From: Podarcis bocagei
Lineage: Eukaryota
DNA length: 64,000 bases
NCBI GenBank assembly: GCA_964188305.1
Contig: OZ076892.1
Strand: one strand, 5' to 3'
A program made the translations under genes and the position numbers. Positions 6,001 through 62,293 of the stretch are shown piece by piece. The notes beneath the pieces are model-generated. The model saw nothing but the letters and a program-made list of their open reading frames with translations. It made no database searches and was not told the origin of the DNA. Position 1 is the stretch's first letter. Every line of letters begins with the position of its first letter.

Positions 6001-6236
6001 AAACACAGAGAACACTGGGTTAAAAAAGCTACCCACTTCATGGCCGAGCAAGAGCTATTTGGATGGTAAGGTTATAAAAATAGAACTGGTTGGCAGACAA
6101 AGGAAGTAACTTAAGATGGTAGAATAAATTGGAATCTAGCAAAAGCTTTCCGCAGGAGAATTCCCATTTGTGCAGGGCTCCCCTCAGGTAAAAAGAAAAG
6201 AACACACCACCATCAGAAGCAAGCAATGGCACTTAC

Positions 6237-6373
6237 CTGAGCCTGCGTTTTCTTGATCGAGAAACAGACCGGGATCTGGACCGAGATTTTGAGAAAGACC
6301 GGGACCGGGATCGAGAACCAGATCTTGAACGAGAGGAACGGGACCCCGATTTGGATTTATTTGTTTTTGACAT
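6237..6373 (-). CDS. THRAP3: THRAP3 first coding exon (exon starts at 6398 with 5'UTR)
   Basis: ATG at 6373-6371. [46 protein letters not shown], 137 coding nt. Donor AG|GTAAGT at 6236, acceptor tgttgacAG at 6399-6400. Joins in frame to the 3074 exon. Confidence 0.95.
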
Positions 6374-7545
6374 TTTTTCTCACTCCTTTCACTTAATTCT
6401 GTCAACATAGAGGGGAAAATAAAAACAACAAATGAATCAATTTCCAGATTCTTTCCTTGGTTGTTTGAAGATGTCCAAGAATAGCAAAATTCTCTTTGCA
6501 AAGCAAATAACGGATATCCAACAGCCTTTGCAAGTTAGCTCTAAAAAGAACACCAGAAAACTTGAGAAGTCTCTGGACTAGTTTAGACACCCTTTTATTC
6601 AACAACAATTCCAATCCTGCTTTTGATTTAAGTCTACTAACCACAAAGCCTATACATGTCCAGGTTCCTGTAACTATTCCTTTATGTGGTGAGAATGGAG
6701 TCCTAACAGTCACCAACTAACGCACTTAAGACGAAAGAACACTTACATACTATCTCCCATGGATGAGGTGCCGACTCTTTGAAAAGCCCTGCTGCTGGTA
6801 AACCAAGTTATACACTTGTTACAATCAAGCAGCCACTAGGGACTCTTGTTGCAGCCAAAATAAATCAGGAACCCTTCCAAATATTTCAAGGGTTCAAATG
6901 TTGGTGATGGAAAAGAAGTTTCTCTATAGCACTCAACAGCTTTGAATAATCAATTAATAATTTTAAGAGGAAGAAATGTAGCAAAATTATCTCAAACGGA
7001 AACCCCACGATTATAGAAAAAAGCAGGGGCAAATCAACCATCAGCATGACGCAGTTGTAACAAAGCAGAGAATGATTAGGTGGTTTCTCAATGACGATTT
7101 TGTGTGTGTCCAGTTTTACACCCAGGGAAAAACCCAGCACGTGACAGAAAAACACACAATTTTAAAGAGAAAACATCAAATACTAATACAAATGAGAAGC
7201 AACTTTATTCAATGCCACTCAAAATATCCTAATTCAAAATAGAAAAAAGCATTATCTTTTTAATTGGTTTTATAAAGTACTACAAACATAAAACACTTGC
7301 AGAAACCCTATAAAAAGCAACTTACTACAAATCTGTTTATTTCTGCAAACGTTTTCCATAAATCATATTTGGAATTTTTGCTTTCAAAATTGGCAACTTT
7401 AACATAATCCACAAAACAGCTCTTGGTACAAGACTCGTTTCACCCTCAACCCAGCACAGTTCTAATTCAGGGTAGCAATAAAAAGAGTGAGTGCTCCCTT
7501 TCATTCCCAAGCCATTTTTGAAATGTAACGGGTAAAGTGGCATAC

Positions 7546-7652
7546 CTCAAGTAATCCTGAGTGAGGACCTGAAATCCTCCCTCTACTTCTGCCAGGACTG
7601 TTTAGTAGACCTAACTCCATAAGCTAACACCTGGCCTGGCCCATCACTTTCA
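7546..7652 (-). other. THRAP3: Candidate non-coding 5'UTR exon of THRAP3
   Basis: 107 nt bounded by ctctttgtacAG acceptor and GAG|GTATGC donor, ~1.15 kb upstream of the ATG exon. Mammalian THRAP3 has a similar ~100-nt UTR exon (recalled). Confidence 0.5.
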
Positions 7653-8137
7653 CTGTACAAAGAGCAAACTGAAGCTCAAGTTCTGTTCAGCAAAGTAGGT
7701 TTTGACTTCATTCATCAGTCACCCCTTAACTGGGAATACTTTTGCTTCTTAGAAACTAAGGACAAATTCAGTTGTTGTTTCTGCCACACACTCTCCTATA
7801 CACATTCCAAGCAATTAAATAGAGTGAAGCAACAACACAATTGAGTTCCAGACAGTGTGGTCTCAAGGGTTAACACTTCACCCTCCTCCCACTCCAGCAG
7901 AAGTGCTCCTATTTCAGAGTCAGCTGTGTTCTGAGCATTCAAGAAGCCCTAGATTAGATTTTAAAGATTTCAGCCTCTGCTGACATGTACCCAACAGGAT
8001 ATAAATGTCGGAAGAGATAAAAAAAGAGATGACAATCAGAACAGGCTCCAAAGAGCACATATTTCAGTGGCATGCGCGCGCGCGCACACACGCCACTGAA
8101 ATATGTGCTCTTTGGAGCCTGTTCATTCATTCTCTCA

Positions 8138-8140
<3 letters not shown>

Positions 8141-8184
<44 letters not shown>
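8141..8184. repeat. (TA)n microsatellite, left flank of the PLE
   Basis: Direct reading. A matching (TA)n then (CA)n tract lies at 9346-9397. Confidence 0.95.
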
Positions 8185-8187
<3 letters not shown>

Positions 8188-8238
8188 GGTTTTGGTGTCT
8201 TCGGGTGTCTTCCCGTGTAAGAGTTGGGGTGTCTAGGC

Positions 8239-8272
8239 GACGTTTCGACGAGGTCTCACTCGTCATCTTCAG
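8239..8272 (-). ncRNA. Minimal hammerhead ribozyme core (copy 1, sense to THRAP3 pre-mRNA)
   Basis: On the - strand: CUGAAGA-U-[GACGAG ugagac CUCGUC]-GAAAC-GUC. Conserved CUGANGA and GAAA boxes, 6-bp helix II, palindromic ACGU helix III, GUC cleavage triplet. Confidence 0.78.
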
Positions 8273-9225
8273 GCTGGTGCTTTCGGCTTCTTGTTACTAG
8301 AACAGAGCAGGGTCTCAGTGTTTGAGTTCCTATAAATACTGTTGAGGGGGTGTGGTGTATAGCCTCCAACGTTCTGGGCAGAGAGGAAGTTCCCAGGTTA
8401 ATGTGCCTTTTCTTCTTTTGTTCATTAATTACTTGAGGGATATCTTGAGTGATTACTTGAGTGATATTCTGAGTACCACTTAGGAGGGTCATTAGGTGTG
8501 GATTAGTTGCTAAAGCTTTTGTGTCTTGATCTCCTGAGCTTGAAGAGTTTTTCTGAGAAGATGGCTGTACTGCACTTAGTTGTGCTCTGGCTTGGCTTCG
8601 TGTATAGGGGCGAGCTGTGGTTTTGTGCCCTGTGCCAGCCAGATCTGTGTAGGGATTGCAGGGGGGTGCAGCATCCGGAGGTGCCACTATGGTTTGGCTA
8701 CTGGATGGTGTCTGTAATTTATCTGTGGAGAGGGTCTGGGTTTGGGTCTGGTGTGGTTGATTGGAGATGGCGTTCTGTGTGCCTCTGGTTCTGGTGTCGG
8801 TTTTTGTGGGGTGGCACCTCCGGATGCTGCACCCCCCTGCAATCCCTACACAGATCTGGCTGGCACAGGGCACAAAACCACAGCTCGCCCCTATACACGA
8901 AGCCAAGCCAGAGCACAACTAAGTGCAGTACAGCCATCTTCTCAGAAAAACTCTTCAAGCTCAGGAGATCAAGACACAAAAGCTTTAGCAACTAATCCAC
9001 ACCTAATGACCCTCCTAAGTGGTACTCAGAATATCACTCAAGTAATCACTCAAGATATCCCTCAAGTAATTAATGAACAAAAGAAGAAAAGGCACATTAA
9101 CCTGGGAACTTCCTCTCTGCCCAGAACGTTGGAGGCTATACACCACACCCCCTCAACAGTATTTATAGGAACTCAAACACTGAGACCCTGCTCTGTTCTA
9201 GTAACAAGAAGCCGAAAGCACCAGC

Positions 9226-9259
9226 CTGAAGATGACGAGTGAGACCTCGTCGAAACGTC
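9226..9259 (+). ncRNA. Minimal hammerhead ribozyme core (copy 2)
   Basis: CTGAAGA 9226-9232, helix II GACGAG/CTCGTC 9234-9251, GAAAC 9252-9256, GTC 9257-9259. Predicted cut after C9259. Confidence 0.78.
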
Positions 9260-9342
9260 GCCTAGACACCCCAACTCTTACACGGGAAGACACCCGAAGA
9301 CACCAAAACCTGCATTCCTGTACCCGTGAAAATCTACGAAAG

Positions 9343-9384
<42 letters not shown>

Positions 9385-9643
9385 CACACACACACACCGT
9401 TTAGTTCTTCCTTGAAATGTGCCAGAAAAATCTACAACTTTTACAGATGCATACCTCTCATGCATGATGCTATTTAGATTTGTACATATAAATCAGGAAA
9501 AGGGAACATTTGCAGCCTTCCAGATGTTATTGGACTTCAACTCACAACAGTCCCAGGCATCATTGGTAAATGACTGCAGTCCCGCAACATCTGAAGGGCC
9601 ACATGTCCCCCCCCCAATAAAAACAGGGGTGTAGTGGTAAAAT

Positions 9644-9789
9644 NNNNNNNNNNNNNNNNNNNNNNNNNNNNNNNNNNNNNNNNNNNNNNNNNNNNNNNNN
9701 NNNNNNNNNNNNNNNNNNNNNNNNNNNNNNNNNNNNNNNNNNNNNNNNNNNNNNNNNNNNNNNNNNNNNNNNNNNNNNNNNNNNNNNNN
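9644..9789. other. Assembly gap (146 N)
   Basis: Run of N. Confidence 1.
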
Positions 9790-9790
9790 T

Positions 9791-9911
9791 CGGCCCTCCA
9801 GCTGTTTTGGGACTACATTTCCCATCATCCCTGACCACTGGTCCTGTTAGCTAGGGATGATGGGAGTTGTAATTCCAAAAACACCTGGAGGGCTGAGTTT
9901 GGCCACCACTG
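9791..9911. mobile_element. Palindromic hAT-type MITE (left end lost in gap)
   Basis: ccagctgttttgggactacatttcccatcatccct...agggatgatgggagttgtaattccaaaaacacctgg, ending ccaccactg. Same family as 30108, 51543 and 52572. Confidence 0.7.
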
Positions 9912-11458
9912 GTTTACACTAAACTGTAGTCTATTAAGCCAGGCCCCCCAGGCTGCAGGGGTGGAAGGGGAAAAACCTGGTTCCAGCCCTAGCCAGCTCC
10001 ACTCTCGTGGTCAGAAGAGGGACAGTGGCAGCAGGAGGCTTCCTTCCCCTGGAAATGGCCAGGCTGCCTGTAGTTGCACCCGCACCCTCCTAAGGAGCAA
10101 TATCTGCTAAGTGCAATAAAGCAAGGTATGCCTGTACAAACACACATAATGACAGCCCTCATTGCTATCGCCCCCCTCCCCGCAAGGAGAATTCAATAAT
10201 GCAGGCACAACAAAGAGCAACAGAACACAGCATAATACCCAATTTATTAAGATTATATAGGAAATCATGAGCATGGAAATTCCTAAACATATGGAGTTTT
10301 TCTAAACATTTGGCTGTCAATTAACTGCTGCATTTCTACAAATTCTGACCCACAGCTCTCTACTTTTAAAAAATATATTTTTCTAGAAATGTTTTCAGAA
10401 TTGTACAAAACAGTAAAATAAACATGAAGAATCTCTTAAATGTAATGTACATCTCATTCTTTGCCAAAAAAGAATGAGCACTTTTTATGGAAACAAGACC
10501 TTTAAAACAATTTTCAGAGGGGTGTGACTCTACCAGCAGTAATAGGAACTTTAAAAAAACAAGGCCCTAAATATAGTTGAGCACGTATAATGAACTCACA
10601 CAATGTAAAAAATAAACAAAGAAGTCAAAGAAACAGAATTGGAAGAACATAAAATGGTTTAGTCCGATGCCCTGCTGATGCAAGATATCCACTACCACAG
10701 AATCCCTGACAGCTGGCCATTCAGCCTCTACTTAAAAACTTCTAAGGATGCAGCCCTATGATGAAACCCATTTGCTGATTTGCCGTGGACTGAGTCCATA
10801 ACAAGAATTAGTGTTACACGGTATTTAAGATAGAAGTTGTATCCAACATTACTTGGATCACTGAAATTAATGGGCATGACTAAATCAGGTCCATTAATTT
10901 CAATGGGTCTACTTGGAGTATGACTAATGCAGGATACAAGCCACTGGTTTTTTTTTGGCATGTTTTTAAAAACTGTGTTCTACCCTGCCTGGTCAGAAAG
11001 TGGTCTATAAATATTTTAAATAAATTTGCATAAAGGTTATGCAACACACACACTCAAGCCCTGTGGGCAACCTACCTTAATTGGACTGCTTTGTCACAAC
11101 TTGATGGTTGCCTGGCACTGTCTCCTTCCACTTGAAATAAAAAAATTCTGCAAAATAAAAGTAATTGTTAATATTGCAACTGCTCACATGAGAACATCCA
11201 CAATAACCATTCTACCTTGAAGAAAGGTGTCAAGGCAGTGCTACTCTAATTAAGCCTTCCTCAAATCTGTTACTCTAGCACAAACCACTTTGTTTTCTCA
11301 AGTAACTGTGTCCATGTATAAACCTACCAAACTTGAACACACCTCAGTGGTAATCTCACACTTCTCCAGTCCCTGCAAGGAGAGACAACCAGCAAAATTT
11401 ACAGAGACTATGACTGTGAAAACATTCAGTTAGTTGTCTACTGGTTGGTCTCCTAGTA

Positions 11459-36729: not shown

Positions 36730-37224
36730 GCACGCAGAGCGCCGATTTCACAATAAACACCTGTCTAGAAGCCCTGGCACTTGTGCCCCAACAGCAGCAG
36801 CTCTGCACCTCCAGCTGGGCTCGCCCGCTCCCTTCGCAGCAAGGTGGGCCAACGCGAGCAGCTCCCGCGGAGCGAGCCGCTGTCTGCCCCCGCCCCCTTG
36901 TGCAAATCCAGCGCTCCTAATTGGTTCGGCTTGTGGCACGGGCGGGGCTCGAGGCGCCAGACGCGATATAAGGGAGCGAGCGAACAATGCGCCTCGATCC
37001 CGACTGGGTCGCGTTGGGGGGGCGGGGAAGCGGGAAAAGCCGCGCTTTCGGCAGCGGAGCGGGCGAGCGAGCGAGCACAGAAAGGCTAAGCTACCAAACC
37101 AGGCGGCGGCACCGCCTTCTTAGTTGAAAAAGCCCGGCGCTTGCACTTTTCCAGGCGGAGGAGCGCGCCCTACCGCGCGCTGCGCTCAGGTGAGCTCCCG
37201 TCGCAGGTGGGACGCGAGCAAGCC
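36730..37224 (+). promoter_or_regulatory. MYCL: MYCL CpG-island promoter / 5'UTR
   Basis: Octamer-like GTGCAAAT near 36900, inverted CCAAT (ATTGG) near 36920, TATAA at 36967-36971. AATGCGCCT at 36986 resembles the recalled human MYCL mRNA 5' end. Confidence 0.75.
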
Positions 37225-37699
37225 ATGGAGCTCGACCTGCCTCAGGCGCCGCCGGCGCCGCCCTACTTCTACGACCACCAAGAGTCGCCCGGCGACGACT
37301 TCCACCGCTCGAGCGCGCCCAGCGAGGACATCTGGAAGAAGTTCGAGCTGCTGCCCAGTCCGCCGGCCTCGCCGCTGGCGCCGGGCCCCGCCGAGGACGC
37401 GGCCGCCGACTACCTGCTGGAGCCCGGCCGGCTGCTGGGCAACCTGAGCGCATTCGTCCTCCGCGACTGCATGTGGAGCGGCTTCTCGGCCCGCGAGCGC
37501 CTGGAGAAAGCCATGGGCGAGAAGCTGACCGCCAAGCCGCCCGCCCAGGGCCCGCCAGCCGCCCCCGCCCCCACCGCCGCCCAAGCACCGCACGACGCCG
37601 CGCTAGGCGGGCTGTGCGTGGCCCCCGGCGCCGTCTTCGCCTGGCCCGCCGACTGCAAGCTCCCGCCCTCCTCCGGCTCCGAGAGCCAAAGCGAATCGG
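37225..37699 (+). CDS. MYCL: L-Myc first coding exon
   Basis: gccATGG Kozak context. YFYD...APSEDIWKKFELLPSPPASP (Myc box I), RDCMWSGFSARERLEKA (Myc box II). Donor TCGG|GTAAGG at 37700, phase 1. Confidence 0.95.
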
Positions 37700-38879
37700 G
37701 TAAGGCTGCCTCCGGGCCGGGGAGCGGGGCGGCGGACCGCACGGTACCCCCCAGGGGCACCCAGTCCTGCAGCTCTGGCTGGGCGCCGAAAGTTTCTCTC
37801 CCGGGACAAAAGGCTCCTCTCGCTCTTAATTTCCCGTGGCGCCCCTTGGACTGCGCCCCCTGTCTTCCCAGGTCTCCGTGCAGAATTCTGCAGTCCCCTT
37901 GGAGGGATCTTTTATTGCAAAATTCTCCGAGCTCTTGCATTTACTCTGCCCCCCTCCCGCCCCACTTCTTCACCAGAGGTTCTACTTTCAGGGGGAAGTG
38001 TGCATTGTCGTCCCGGCCCAGCTTCCCAAGGCTGCTGCTGGGACTTGCATAACGTGGTGAGCCCAACCCATCTGTCTTGCTTCCTCCTCCAACCTCTCCC
38101 AATTTAGCACCCTTTAGCACAGCCGGCGGGGGAGGGGGTGCCTGCCGCAGGACCGAAAAGAGAAGAAAAGGCGCCACTTGCGCAACTCCCTCCACCACTC
38201 CAGGAGGTTGGGTGGGGGGACCCAAGATACAGAGCATTTCTTTGAGAGGTTGCATTTCAGCAGGGCGGGCTTCTCCAGAGTTTCCTGGTTCAGGTTGTAA
38301 ACGCTGTCTATAAACCTGTGTTTATTGAAAAAGTTTGGCTTGGTTGGTGTTGCAGGCTGCTTATGCTTGTGGATTCTGGAGGGTTGCCACAGTAGACCTG
38401 TGATGGACAAAGGCTCTGGAAGGATTTGACCTGGGAAATACAAGAATTGTCTTGCAAACCCCCCTCCTCCCACAAAATGTTGAATGCAGTCTCAGGTCAG
38501 GTTCTGCAGCCAAGGGGAACCAGCCATATTATGCATGTTATAAAAGTTTTGTTGCATAAGTGCCCTCATCTATGCTTATAAGTGCATCAGTTGACATGTA
38601 ACCACTACTTTGCTGAGTTTGCTAACCTAGATCAGTCCAAAACAGCATCTCCACTGGCTGGTGCTGGTGGGAGTTGTAGTCCAAAACATCTGGAGGGCCC
38701 AAGGTTGGGGAAGCAAAGTCATTCCCATTTGATTATTGGCACATGACTTGCTGTTCAGCTATCCTCTGATGGAGGCATGCAAAGGCAGTGTGTGTGTGAA
38801 TGGGATCATAAAGACCACCTTTCTGTCTTTGAATCCAAAGAGTCATCAACCCCTTGCAATGCAGGAGTCAACATCAATG

Positions 38880-42000: not shown

Positions 42001-43602
42001 TTACATTTGCTCAGGACTTTGCAATAGCACCAAGTCAGACTGCTTGAGAGAAGGTAGATCAGACCGCTCATCCTTTCAGTAAATGCTAAAGGTTAAGAAT
42101 CTAGTCTTTGCCCTCAAAATAAAGCAGCTTACAGGGTGAGATTTGAATCTGGAACCATGCCCAACACTTTATGGAGTGGGCAATAAGTACATTAGGATGC
42201 TCTAGTAGTAGATTGGGAAGGACTTTTCAGTTTGCCTTTTAAAAAAAGAAATAAGTGAAAACCTTCTGGTCGGCCTTGAGCTAATGACTTATCTTTCATC
42301 TTGGGTGTTCTTCATACGAAAATGAGCACTACTTGGTGGATTTTGATGTGGTGTTTATAGCTCTGTTTACCAGTTTCTGAGTTGTGTAGCTTCACCGTTA
42401 ATTTAAAAGCATACTTATTCTGCTCTTTAGGCGAAAAGATAAATGAAAACAAGGAGGGGAAAAGAAAACAAGTGAACTTGATAATCAGTTCTTAAAGTTA
42501 GTTTTCATCTCTATATATGGCTTATGAGGTGCAGAAGGAACCTGGCTCAGCAGGTGCATCTTAAATAACCCCTTTGCCCTGCACTTCACCCCCTGGCTTG
42601 TGCATCTTCCTAGTCCTTTCCTACTTCAGCCTCTGCTGTGTGTGGTAGCTTCAGGAACCAAAAGAGATGAAGAGACCCACCTGTCCCCAGTTGGCCTCAG
42701 TGCTCAATAGTAAGACATCTGTAGACGAGCTCTTTGCTGATTCTGCAGAAACAGATTTCATAGCATCCCTGGAGCCAGGGATTAAAAGAAAGGTGGGGCT
42801 TTGCCTTGCCCTTTTGTTTTCAGTCCCCTCCCCCCCCCTCCACAACATTTGGTGCAGGTCCCCATCTCTTCTTCATCATTCTCCACTGATATTTGAGCAA
42901 CCTTTGTCACCACCCTGTGTGTGTGCAAGTTCTCCATTTGGGATTCAGGAAGGAGGAAAAGTAGAGAGGCTTCAGTAGTAATCTTTAGGAAGCCTTTGAT
43001 AGCTCAGGTCTGGGAAGGTGATGACTTGCCCCAAATGTGCTGCTCCTTCTGTGATGCAGCTGATGTTGGTTACTGCTTCCCAGATTCTTACTACTTCAAA
43101 TGGAGCTGCATGGTTTTATGTTCCTGAACACCTGCTCCCCTCAAAATGCTTGGACCACTACCTTGTTGCAACTTGCAATGGCATAGAAAGGTTGGTTCCT
43201 TCATTAGACACCTCATGCAGTTCTGTTTAGAATAAGGAACTGGGAATCGGTCCCAGACCCTTTGAGGAATCCAGTTCCACTTGATGTACAGAGCTGGCTT
43301 TGAAGCAAAGCAGGTTGAGTCTAGTCAGTGAGGCTGCCTTGTAACCTCAGTACAGCTTGAATGTATGTATGCTGCCTTGATTTTCGTGGTGGTAAAAAAG
43401 TGGGGTGATAAAAAAGTCAGCTACACTTCCCATCATCCCTGTCCATTGGCTAAGCTGGCTGAGGCTGATGGGAGCTGTAGTACAAAACATCTGGGGGGCA
43501 CCTGGTTGGCTGCATGAAACCCACCATGGTGTGCTAACTTGTGTGTTACTGCCTGAAGGTTTACCAAGGTTTAATGGCTTGTTCCCTCTTGTTTGTACAC
43601 AG

Positions 43603-44195
43603 AAGGGGAAGAAATTGACGTGGTGACGGTTGAGAAGAGGCAGTCGCTGGGTGTGAGGAAGCCGGTGACCATCACTGTGCGGGCTGACCCCTTGGACCCT
43701 TGCATGAAACGTTTCCACATATCCATCCACCAGCAGCAGCACAATTACGCAGCCCGCTCACCACCCGAGGCTTGTTCCTGCACCACTGCCTTGGAGAAAA
43801 GCAGTCAAGAGGAAGAGGAGGAGGAGGAGGAGGAGGATGGTGGTGCACAGTCCCTGAGGCAAGTGGCAGAGCCTTCCTCTCTTGAACCTTTCCTCCTGAA
43901 ATCCGGGAGCGCTCCCAGTTCGGACAGTGAAGACGTGACCAAGCGGAAAAACCACAACTACTTGGAGCGCAAGCGGCGCAACGACCTGCGCTCGCGTTTC
44001 CTGGCACTGAGGGACCAGGTCCCTGGTCTCGCCACCTGCCCCAAAACCCCCAAAGTGGTGGTGCTGAGCAAAGCGTCAGAGTATCTGCAGTCACTACTCA
44101 AAGCAGAGCAGCAGATGGTTGCTGAGAAGAAGCTGCTAAAATTGCATCAGCTTCAGCTGTTGAAACGGATTTCGTACCTCAAGAGTGCGCATTAG
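43603..44195 (+). CDS. MYCL: L-Myc last coding exon (bHLH-LZ)
   Basis: Acceptor tttgtacacAG at 43601-43602. EEIDVVTVEKRQSL...DPLDPCMKRFHISIHQQQHNYAA...KRKNHNYLERKRRNDLRSRFLALRDQVP...KTPKVVVLSKA, then TAG. Spliced CDS is 1068 nt = 355 aa. Confidence 0.96.
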
Positions 44196-52719: not shown

Positions 52720-53470
52720 CGACCACACAAGAAGACGCTTGTGCTGCTGCAGGCTATCAGAGAAGCGGCGCCCTGGACGCTGGGAATGTGCAGAGTATTA
52801 TTATTATTTTTGCAAAAGGAGGGCCCGTTTTTGCTGCTTTACGGAGGGCGACGCACATGCGCGGCCCTCCAGATCTTCCTGCTCCCCTCGGCAGGACCAG
52901 CGGCGATGGCCATGGATGCTCTCTGCCCGCGCTGGGCCGGCTTGCCGCGAGGGAGGCGGGCACGGCGAAGGCACAGGCAGCAGCTGGTTGGGGCCCGGCA
53001 GGCGGGCGTCCCGGCCCCCTCGGCCGCGGCCCCGCCTCCTCGCGGCCTGCTTCTTCCTCCTCCTCCTCCGGCTACCGCAAAGCGGCCGAGGCCTTGCAGC
53101 GCATGGCGAGTTAGCCGCCCGCCTCGCTCGCCCGCCAGCCACAATGGCGTCTGCCGCGCGGCCGCTGCCCCTGGTGGTGATCCTGGGCGCGACGGGCACC
53201 GGCAAATCCCGCCTGGCGCTGCAGCTGGGCCGCCGCCTCGGCGGGGAGATCATCAGCGCCGACTCCATGCAGGTAGGGAGGGAGGGAGGCAGGCAGGCAA
53301 CAGAGGGAAGGAGACCCCGTCCCTGCCTGGTACTAATTGGGAGGCGAGGGGATCAGCAAGCGCGTGCAGAGCTCATTGCTCGCAACAGCCGGGCCAGCCC
53401 AGGGCCAGCAAGAAGGAAGCGCCTCTGGTGGCAAGGGAAGAGGGGAGGCAGGGCTTAGCCTCGGAACCTC
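52720..53470 (+). promoter_or_regulatory. TRIT1: TRIT1 CpG island / promoter
   Basis: CpG- and GC-rich stretch overlapping exon 1. Confidence 0.75.
53144..53272 (+). CDS. TRIT1: tRNA dimethylallyltransferase exon 1
   Basis: [43 protein letters not shown] (MiaA/IPT P-loop and DSMQ motif). Donor CAG|GTAGGG. Exact start codon uncertain. Confidence 0.9.
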
Positions 53471-62098: not shown

Positions 62099-62293
62099 GG
62101 GGAAGGGCCATAGCTCAGTGGTAGAGAATCTGCCTTGCAAGCAGAAGGTCCCAGGTTCAATCCTGAGCACCTCCAGTAGGGTTGGGAGAGAGTCCTGCCC
62201 GAAATCCTGGAGAACCACTGCCAGTCAGGGTAGTCGGTACTGAGCTAGATGGACTAAAGGTCTGACTCAGTATAAGGAATTTTCCTATGTTCC
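62099..62293 (+). mobile_element. tRNA-Ala-derived SINE (Squam3-like)
   Basis: A-box TAGCTCAGTGG at 62111-62121, TGC anticodon remnant, B-box GGTTCAATCC at 62154-62163, CR1-like tail ...CAGTATAAGG...TTCCTATGTTCC. Confidence 0.8.

Follow-up and report, generated by a model that had tools for sequence, protein, structure and literature searches.

The 64-kb stretch of Podarcis bocagei DNA analyzed here (the window; all coordinates are window positions) contains, at 8183-9345, an inverted pair of fragments of a Penelope-like element (PLE), each with a hammerhead ribozyme motif. We are confident that the locus is a young, truncated, head-to-head double copy of a PLE in a (TA)n microsatellite within an intron of the THRAP3 gene, and that each arm carries the minimal hammerhead ribozyme (min-HHR) of the element family, most likely as an inert passenger. 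As it stands, the locus is a dead, non-coding palindrome. We regard its anatomy, its family membership, its two 3′ ends, its intron context and the energetics of its hairpin as established.

A repeat search of the window identified two inverted arms, 8183-8687 and 8811-9315, which are 505 nt each, 100% complementary and separated by a spacer of 123 nt (8688-8810). The reading frame through the spacer is open on the minus strand only, so the spacer represents extra 5′ length of the minus-strand copy. This first copy spans 8183-8811 (∼628 nt, 5′-truncated), includes the spacer and terminates at 8183 in a 3′ end that lacks the tail. The second copy, also 5′-truncated, lies on the plus strand at 8811-9345 and consists of 505 nt identical to the first plus a 30-nt tail (9316-9345), an optional 3′ extension that is present on the plus arm only and through which the N-terminal reading frame stays open. 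The copies meet at 8810/8811 with a 1-nt overlap. The (TA)n stretch on the left (8140-8186) adjoins the 3′ end of the minus-strand copy and is the target microsatellite; other family members, too, run into (AT)n at their ends, and the (AT)n stretch on the right (9346-9380) is the other half of the target.

What remains in each arm is the end of the polyprotein tail (184 or 143 codons), a hammerhead of the minimal type I and the beginning of the following unit (28-38 codons). On the minus strand, the fragment of the polyprotein open reading frame (ORF) at 8256-8810 encodes a low-complexity C-terminal tail, located downstream of the GIY-YIG endonuclease and ending in ...HQPEDDE. There are zero differences between the two arms, which indicates either a recent insertion or a later homogenization of the arms. 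An earlier note on this DNA, made from the sequence alone, had described two mirror copies of a 34-nt motif in a (TA)n-flanked inverted repeat and had related them to the inverted partial duplicates seen in PLE insertions. Its coordinates are correct, and the duplicate takes the form of an inverted, 5′-truncated double copy in (TA)n.

Only two copies of the 34-nt motif (CTGAAGA-T-GACGAG-TGAGAC-CTCGTC-GAAAC-GTC) are present in the window, at 9226-9259 on the plus strand and at 8239-8272 on the minus strand, 954 nt apart. In a shuffle control (n = 100), the expected number of occurrences was 0 for the exact string with up to three mismatches and for the relaxed core pattern. In the plus-strand copy, the 5′ half of the core, C3-A9 (CUGAAGA, 9226-9232), is followed by an unpaired or bulged U (9233) between A9 and position 10.1 and by a helix II of 6 bp (9234-9239 with 9246-9251), which in the predicted fold is closed by the pair G9234-C9251 (G10.1-C11.1). 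Loop 2 occupies 9240-9245 and G12 A13 A14 occupy 9252-9254. The palindrome ACGU (15.1-16.1; 9255-9258) stands in place of a closed helix III, and C17 (9259) occupies the position of the cleavable H17. The conserved core (C3 U4 G5 A6 N7 G8 A9, G12 A13 A14 and H17) is complete, and an identical core is found in two related contigs, L125 and L001, described below.

With these positions, the motif has every sequence feature of the published min-HHR, as had been proposed from its ACGU-only helix III. The predicted cuts, between 9259 and 9260 in the plus-strand copy and between 8239 and 8238 in the minus-strand copy, are also where the earlier note had placed them. Its view that helix I is weak stands for the 2 bp next to the core (9224-9225 with 9260-9261), which are the only ones there; the distal pairing that it suggested in addition is not clearly retained in L001. 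The ribozyme sits at the unit junction and overlaps both a stop and a start codon of the element. The element ORF ends at a stop in loop 2 (8256-8258 on the minus strand; TGA at 9240-9242 on the plus strand), and a second frame, MTSETSSKRR..., is opened by the hammerhead ATG, which is made up of A9, the bulged U and G10.1 (9232-9234).

The earlier note had called for a search with hammerhead models. The Rfam models (Hammerhead_1, _3, _II, HH9 and HH10) gave no match at the gathering score, nor at E ≤ 10 on 8100-9400. This silence is expected because the motif is of the minimal type, without a closed helix III and with almost no helix I; a special relaxed descriptor was needed for min-HHRs, given their lack of a closed helix III and their short and poorly defined helix I (PMC4209133). 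The other Rfam matches were rejected as spurious microRNA-hairpin and (TA)n hits produced by the palindrome.

Comparison with related sequences assigns the arms, with reasonable directness, to the 3′ part of an endonuclease-positive PLE of the Penelope/Poseidon type, the longest copy of the same family reaching only to the C-terminal end of the reverse transcriptase (RT). A Pfam search gave no match for the arm ORF or the short N-terminal ORF and nothing useful for L001; the arm ORF has no match because it is a low-complexity tail. With the tail as query, phmmer against 1.8 billion representative proteins returned three matches, namely a Podarcis muralis TSNAX model, the product of the ENA contig L001 and a Micrurus fragment, none of which carries an RT. 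Of the later word-indexed protein searches, the first returned the Podarcis TSNAX model alone and the second, seeded with L001, returned P0004-P0006. The L001 product (223 aa, 35% identity to the arm tail) starts with the end of a GIY-YIG endonuclease region, and this part aligns to the Poseidon_Ac protein of Anolis (E 4e-12, with a 71-aa piece of the published record); the contig carries the identical 34-nt hammerhead.

The closest link is provided by P0005, which is encoded on L125, a Logan contig of 1,436 nt from a public assembly. The protein shares 84% amino acid identity with the minus-strand copy over all 184 residues, and the L125 DNA is 93.8% identical. L125 extends upstream through GIY-YIG (PF01541, E 6e-4, just below the Pfam cut-off) into the C-terminal part of the RT, contains the identical hammerhead and ends in ...CCAAAACCTGC followed by (AT)n, like the minus-strand copy. 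The Phrynocephalus protein P0004 passes the Pfam cut-off for GIY-YIG, and P0006 combines the end of the RT region (YVDN motif) with GIY-YIG in one protein. The linkage of other genomic copies to an RT and GIY-YIG, which the earlier note had wanted to see, was found in L125/P0005 and in P0006, and with it the Penelope-like identity of the arms.

The Podarcis muralis match deserves separate mention. P0001 (UniRef A0A670HLY4) is a model of TSNAX (translin-associated factor X) whose last 105 residues are PLE tail at 89% identity, running to ...HQPEDDE and a stop within the hammerhead. This ending is either an exonized PLE arm or an annotation artifact, and annotators should be aware that PLE arms can be exonized.

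The hammerhead is by far the most conserved block of the pseudo-long terminal repeat (pseudo-LTR) and is a feature of the element family. Between the locus and L125, at 6.2% divergence, the longest difference-free stretch (77 nt) includes the hammerhead. Between the locus and L001, at 54% nucleotide identity, only one long identical run is seen. It measures 44 nt, extending from 7 nt before the hammerhead to 3 nt after it, and no other run exceeds 12 nt. The need to preserve the stop and start codons within the motif may account for part of this conservation.

Covariation was assessed in eight sequences drawn from the family at this locus, Poseidon_Ac (a 40-nt piece of the published record), a large family of metagenome contigs from another host and three singletons. 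The three outer pairs of helix II are Watson-Crick in all eight, G-C is invariant at 10.1-11.1, and four pair types occur at 10.2-11.2 and three at 10.3-11.3. None of 500 shuffles reached this score, which is to be read with the singletons having been picked after their pairing was seen and the flanks having been fixed by the search pattern. Core conservation and helix II covariation across copies, which the earlier note had set as a test of its proposal, are thus present in the 44-nt block and the eight-sequence alignment, respectively. In the metagenome family, five contigs have two motifs on opposite strands, and 5/5 of these pairs face outward like the pair in the window.

The metagenome family itself comprises >100 contigs (L002-L121; JGI metagenome contigs, mainly Ga0209149, Ga0209339 and Ga0209338) with one min-HHR, CUGAUGA-A-GCUCGCC-GUU-GGCGAGC-GAAACGUC, frequently arranged in inverted pairs that face outward at a spacing of 270-490 nt. 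Pattern scans of metagenome and viral sequences found no long RT ORF adjoining the motifs, which belonged mostly to a different min-HHR family from another host. The contigs presumably represent host (animal) DNA in host-associated samples, with mostly non-autonomous or decayed PLE copies.

Public reads were compared over 6100-9640, using the Logan contigs of three DNA runs, which represent three related species, and the raw reads of one RNA run, also from a related species. The arms are extremely multi-copy, with a summed contig depth of 10^5-10^6 against 13-58 on unique flanks. Beyond 8811, 29 DNA contigs (X10) and 27 RNA reads (X23) continue into sequence that encodes, on its complementary strand, RLPDIWKLAL, a motif from the end of the endonuclease region that precedes the tail in P0005 and L001. 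This continuation fixes the 5′ truncation of the minus-strand copy at 8810/8811. At the other end, many records that match through 9315 go on with (AT)n in 4/4 runs; 9315 is thus the main 3′ end of the family and (TA)n its usual target. The RNA run also indicates that the family is transcribed in the related species, mostly in sense.

Several further features of these reads and of the flanks were noted. Seven reads of the RNA run X23 match from 9223 on the plus strand (AGCCTGAAGA...) and are preceded by unrelated sequence ending in ...CTGGATAGGG, which was found neither in the window nor in the fetched loci. A possible source is a different PLE or retrozyme family with nothing but the hammerhead block in common; alternatively, the reads may reflect splicing to the CAG just 5′ of the ribozyme (compare the Drosophila virilis Penelope intron). 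To the left of the (TA)n target, and separated from the element by 15 nt plus (TA)n, there is another palindrome at 8039-8124, with 43-nt arms, no spacer, 93% complementarity and a (CG)n/(CA)n center. The short-read contigs of three species break there, and one related-species contig spans it with a 6-nt insertion at 8091. On the right, the flank at 9432-9640 is repetitive (its DNA depth exceeds the single-copy flank 50-300-fold, and numerous contigs break at 9511 and 9543), and a related inverted repeat lies at 9805-9880, beyond an N run that begins at 9644. This right-flank repeat is probably a short interspersed nuclear element (SINE) or a miniature inverted-repeat transposable element of the lizard lineage.

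The host gene is identified by its exons. An exon at 2126-2683 on the minus strand matches Pfam THRAP3_BCLAF1 (E 1.9e-16), and a protein-coding exon of the minus-strand gene was also located at 6236-6379. RNA reads of the related species cover the ATG exon (6237-6398, minus strand) on the strand expected for a minus-strand gene, and run from 6400 into sequence that is unique in the window, at 11078. The resulting intron has GT..AG ends and spans 6399-11075 (2-nt ambiguity), the upstream exon ending at 11076. These junction reads place the insertion in the intron immediately upstream of the ATG exon, with the minus-strand copy in sense. The assignment to a THRAP3 intron upstream of the ATG exon, made earlier from the sequence, is thereby confirmed in both location and orientation.

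How might such a palindrome have formed? We propose that the endonuclease of a Poseidon/Penelope-type PLE cut the (TA)n microsatellite in the THRAP3 intron before the ATG exon and that cDNA synthesis was then primed from both DNA ends, on copies of one element RNA. The tailless 3′ end at 8183 would reflect synthesis from the main reverse-transcription start site, and the tailed 3′ end at 9345 a start ∼30 nt farther down the RNA. Both cDNAs would have terminated prematurely, after 628 and 505 nt of the 3′ part of the element, before their ends were joined head to head at 8810/8811. Two-sided priming is suggested by the two different 3′ ends together with the in vitro behavior of the Anolis relative, since the Poseidon_Ac protein, which has two RT start sites, cuts both DNA strands in vitro and extends them (PMC11167929).

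Two other origins have to be weighed. The inverted copy could have formed after a single insertion, either by a template switch of the RT onto the nascent cDNA or by a later inverted duplication. We consider this unlikely, because the arms end at two different known RT start sites, with and without a tail, each abutting (TA)n, and the snap-back of one cDNA would not yield a second authentic 3′ end; in its favor are the identity of the arms, the 1-nt overlap at the 8811 junction and the fact that the origin of tandem and inverted PLE structures is still called undefined (PMC8557442). Quite improbable, in our view, is an assembly artifact in which a chimeric long read or the assembler mirrored a single 5′-truncated PLE copy. 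The arms are indeed 100% identical, no independent contig spans the junctions, and PLE structures are known to trouble assemblies (PMC8557442). However, the outer flanks differ in sequence and continue one intron, and the asymmetry of the arms (123 nt at the center, a 30-nt tail on one side) is as PLE biology predicts. Moreover, the five dual-hammerhead loci of another family, which come from unrelated assemblies, all face outward, and such motif pairs have been published (PMC4209133).

Whether the ribozymes of the double copy act at this site depends first on their arrangement. A transcript in either direction contains one sense and one antisense copy. Helix III consists of the ACGU palindrome only, so that a second sense copy is needed, and two mirror-image copies with one sense ribozyme per transcript cannot form a cis dimer. 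The earlier note had reached the same point, that dimer cleavage could take place only in trans, and the inverted copies bear this out. The RNA of the region is predicted to fold into a single perfect 505-bp hairpin with a minimum free energy of −1104.8 kcal/mol, which would bury the hammerhead in any read-through RNA, THRAP3 pre-mRNA included. For the 34-mer paired with its antisense, the predicted duplex energy is −66.6 kcal/mol, compared with −7.1 kcal/mol for the helix II hairpin. The isolated monomer is predicted to form helix II and neither helix I nor helix III; a Turner-model cofold of two copies did not form the ACGU helix III, a result that is uninformative for a ribozyme dependent on tertiary structure. 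In the pre-mRNA, the antisense arm would be made first and the sense motif would emerge beside an already zipping duplex.

Published relatives are weak or depend on protein. The min-HHRs have low cleavage activity even as dimers (PMC4209133). The Poseidon_Ac hammerhead shows no activity without the element protein, cleaves with it and is dispensable for insertion in vitro, and the public RNA-seq data examined by those authors held no read ends at the presumptive cleavage site (PMC11167929). Given the lack of a cis dimer, the 505-bp hairpin, the duplex energetics, the earlier synthesis of the antisense arm and the behavior of these relatives, the ribozyme is probably inactive here. The two copies are most likely inert passengers, and we infer that no cleavage takes place in vivo at the locus. 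The earlier idea that cleavage might sever the nascent THRAP3 intron or release element RNA is therefore not sustained: the hairpin buries the ribozyme, there is one sense copy per transcript and reads do not pile up at the cut. Read ends at 8238/8239, which the earlier note had suggested looking for, did not accumulate in the one related-species RNA run, nor did read starts or ends elsewhere on the arms, in what is a weak test, the depth of 25-45 there being made up of reads from other copies.

Other consequences of the insertion can be imagined. It is highly improbable that the minus-strand hammerhead is active in THRAP3 pre-mRNA, cutting the intron after trans ACGU pairing with PLE transcripts and possibly with the help of the PLE protein; if this were so, THRAP3 output would be coupled to PLE expression. 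In favor of such activity, the minus-strand core is intact and reads in the direction of THRAP3, transcripts of the family in a related species are mostly sense, the Poseidon_Ac hammerhead cleaves when its protein is present (PMC11167929) and hammerhead repeats of retrozyme type are reported to be depleted from introns (Li et al. 2026 preprint), suggesting a cost of genic copies. These points are set against a perfect 505-bp hairpin that overwhelmingly outcompetes the ribozyme fold, a helix I of 2 bp and a helix III of 4 bp in trans, the low activity of min-HHRs even as dimers (PMC4209133), and the lack of read ends at the cut site both in the Poseidon_Ac study (PMC11167929) and in the RNA run. 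In that run, from a species whose insertion status is uncertain, the ATG exon is normally spliced to the upstream exon.

The hairpin rather than the ribozyme could also be the main consequence of the locus, with the 505-bp intronic double-stranded RNA being edited by ADAR or diced into small RNAs directed at the PLE family, and the DNA palindrome in (TA)n being fragile and prone to deletion. Long perfect inverted repeats are substrates of editing and dicing pathways. The predicted −1104.8 kcal/mol and the transcription of the host intron within an expressed gene speak for such a role, yet the intron has zero depth outside the repeat in the RNA run and the excess of A>G/T>C changes over the arms is small (37 vs 20 other transitions in RNA, 28 vs 25 in DNA) and comes from other copies, so we think it unlikely. 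A still more far-reaching proposal, to which we give very little credence, is that the intronic palindrome is not neutral, either because a THRAP3-derived hairpin feeds a small-RNA or editing pathway that detects and curbs the highly abundant, transcribed PLE family or because PLE protein and RNA unmask and activate the sense hammerhead in trans, in which case THRAP3 pre-mRNA would be cut whenever PLE expression surges.

Our preferred explanation, an inert double copy made by two-sided priming, also has evidence that counts against it. The case for two-end priming draws on the two 3′ ends and on the in vitro behavior of an Anolis element that belongs to another family. The palindrome and the 8810/8811 junction lack independent confirmation by reads, as the contigs of the three DNA runs break at 8071-8091 and within the repeats. 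Nor did the contigs of related species, broken at the 8039-8124 palindrome and at (TA)n, provide an empty site. With regard to the ribozyme, the read-end test in the RNA run is weak, with zero depth on the intron flanks, and the related species may lack the insertion. In addition, the folding energies are thermodynamic and ignore co-transcriptional kinetics and helicases, so a brief period with a free sense hammerhead might occur.

One of the systems most similar to the locus is Poseidon_Ac (PAc) of Anolis carolinensis (PMC11167929). In both, the AUG of the ORF is formed by A9, the bulged U and G10.1 (the PAc unit junction reads CUGAGGA-U-G...), and the core closes with GAAAC-GUC, the ACGU palindrome replacing helix III; the cut falls 26 nt after the start codon in PAc and 25 nt after it in the window. 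Both have AT-rich targets, and the ends of their endonuclease regions are homologous (E 4e-12 via L001). In PAc, reverse transcription can start at two sites, which bound the tail; the distal site lies 111-118 nt into the ORF (PMC11167929). The tail in the window is likewise bounded by two alternative 3′ ends ∼30 nt apart, 84 and 114 nt downstream of the A of the ATG.

The differences between the two lie in helix II, which is GACGAG/CUCGUC in the window and GCCUGC/GUGGGC, with wobbles, in PAc; in N7, which is A in the window and G in PAc; and in the ORF stop, which follows a low-complexity tail of ∼185 aa and lies in loop 2 in the window, whereas it is ∼125 nt upstream in PAc. The copies also differ in arrangement, the window holding a truncated inverted pair and PAc a tandem array.

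In relation to the min-HHRs of metazoan PLE pseudo-LTRs (Cervera and De la Pena 2014, PMC4209133), nothing essential is different. The locus shares the type-I core, the unpaired nucleotide between A9 and position 10.1, the G10.1-C11.1 pair, a helix II that is long and a helix I that is very short, a palindrome (15.2-16.2 in the published type) as the whole of helix III and a predicted dimer, and its 2-bp helix I is as in the D. virilis variant. Such motifs have been reported in reptiles, and dual motifs on opposite strands lie 100-700 bp apart (PMC4209133), compared with 954 nt in the window. Canonical PLE insertions (Craig et al. 2021, PMC8557442) likewise have strong 5′ truncation, an inverted, 5′-truncated head-to-head copy, a tail of 30-40 bp at one end and a (TA)n target. 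Unlike them, the locus has no full-length unit between its arms, which are short 3′ fragments that code for neither RT nor endonuclease. The pseudo-LTRs of PLEs are also related to animal non-LTR retrozymes (Cervera and De la Pena 2020, PMC7229834; Li et al. 2026 preprint), non-autonomous repeats that bear hammerheads. We considered and rejected this class for the locus, as retrozymes are direct tandem repeats with dimeric ribozymes and circular RNAs, whereas the pair here is inverted with one sense ribozyme per transcript.

Every element of the locus has therefore been published, including min-HHRs, opposite-strand pairs, inverted truncated copies, the tail, (TA)n targets and a start codon in the hammerhead. 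The sole feature not found in Poseidon_Ac, the ORF stop in loop 2, is a property of the family and not of the locus. The locus is a real feature that was correctly identified and is ordinary, and it is probably without ribozyme function at this site. Its value is as a clean example of a PLE insertion with two authentic 3′ ends, one of them tailed, in (TA)n, which fits two-sided priming of cDNA. It also illustrates how strongly the family keeps its hammerhead, since the 44-nt block identical between lineages that are 54% identical overall holds both the stop and the start codon. For THRAP3, the first coding-proximal intron contains a perfect palindrome of 1.1 kb that could be a fragile site and a source of double-stranded RNA. 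Beyond annotation, the locus matters little.

Elsewhere in the window, the plus-strand ORFs at 37141-38052 and 43593-44195 resemble what we take to be exons of MYCL (APSEDIWKKFELLPSPP...; bHLH-zip KRKNHNYLERKRRNDLR...), and the plus-strand ORF at 52739-53458 resembles what is presumably the start of TRIT1. THRAP3, MYCL and TRIT1 would then be neighbors in the window. At 62111-62166 on the plus strand there is a truncated tRNA-like Rfam match (37.5 bits, model positions 8-63), which is probably the head of a tRNA-derived SINE.

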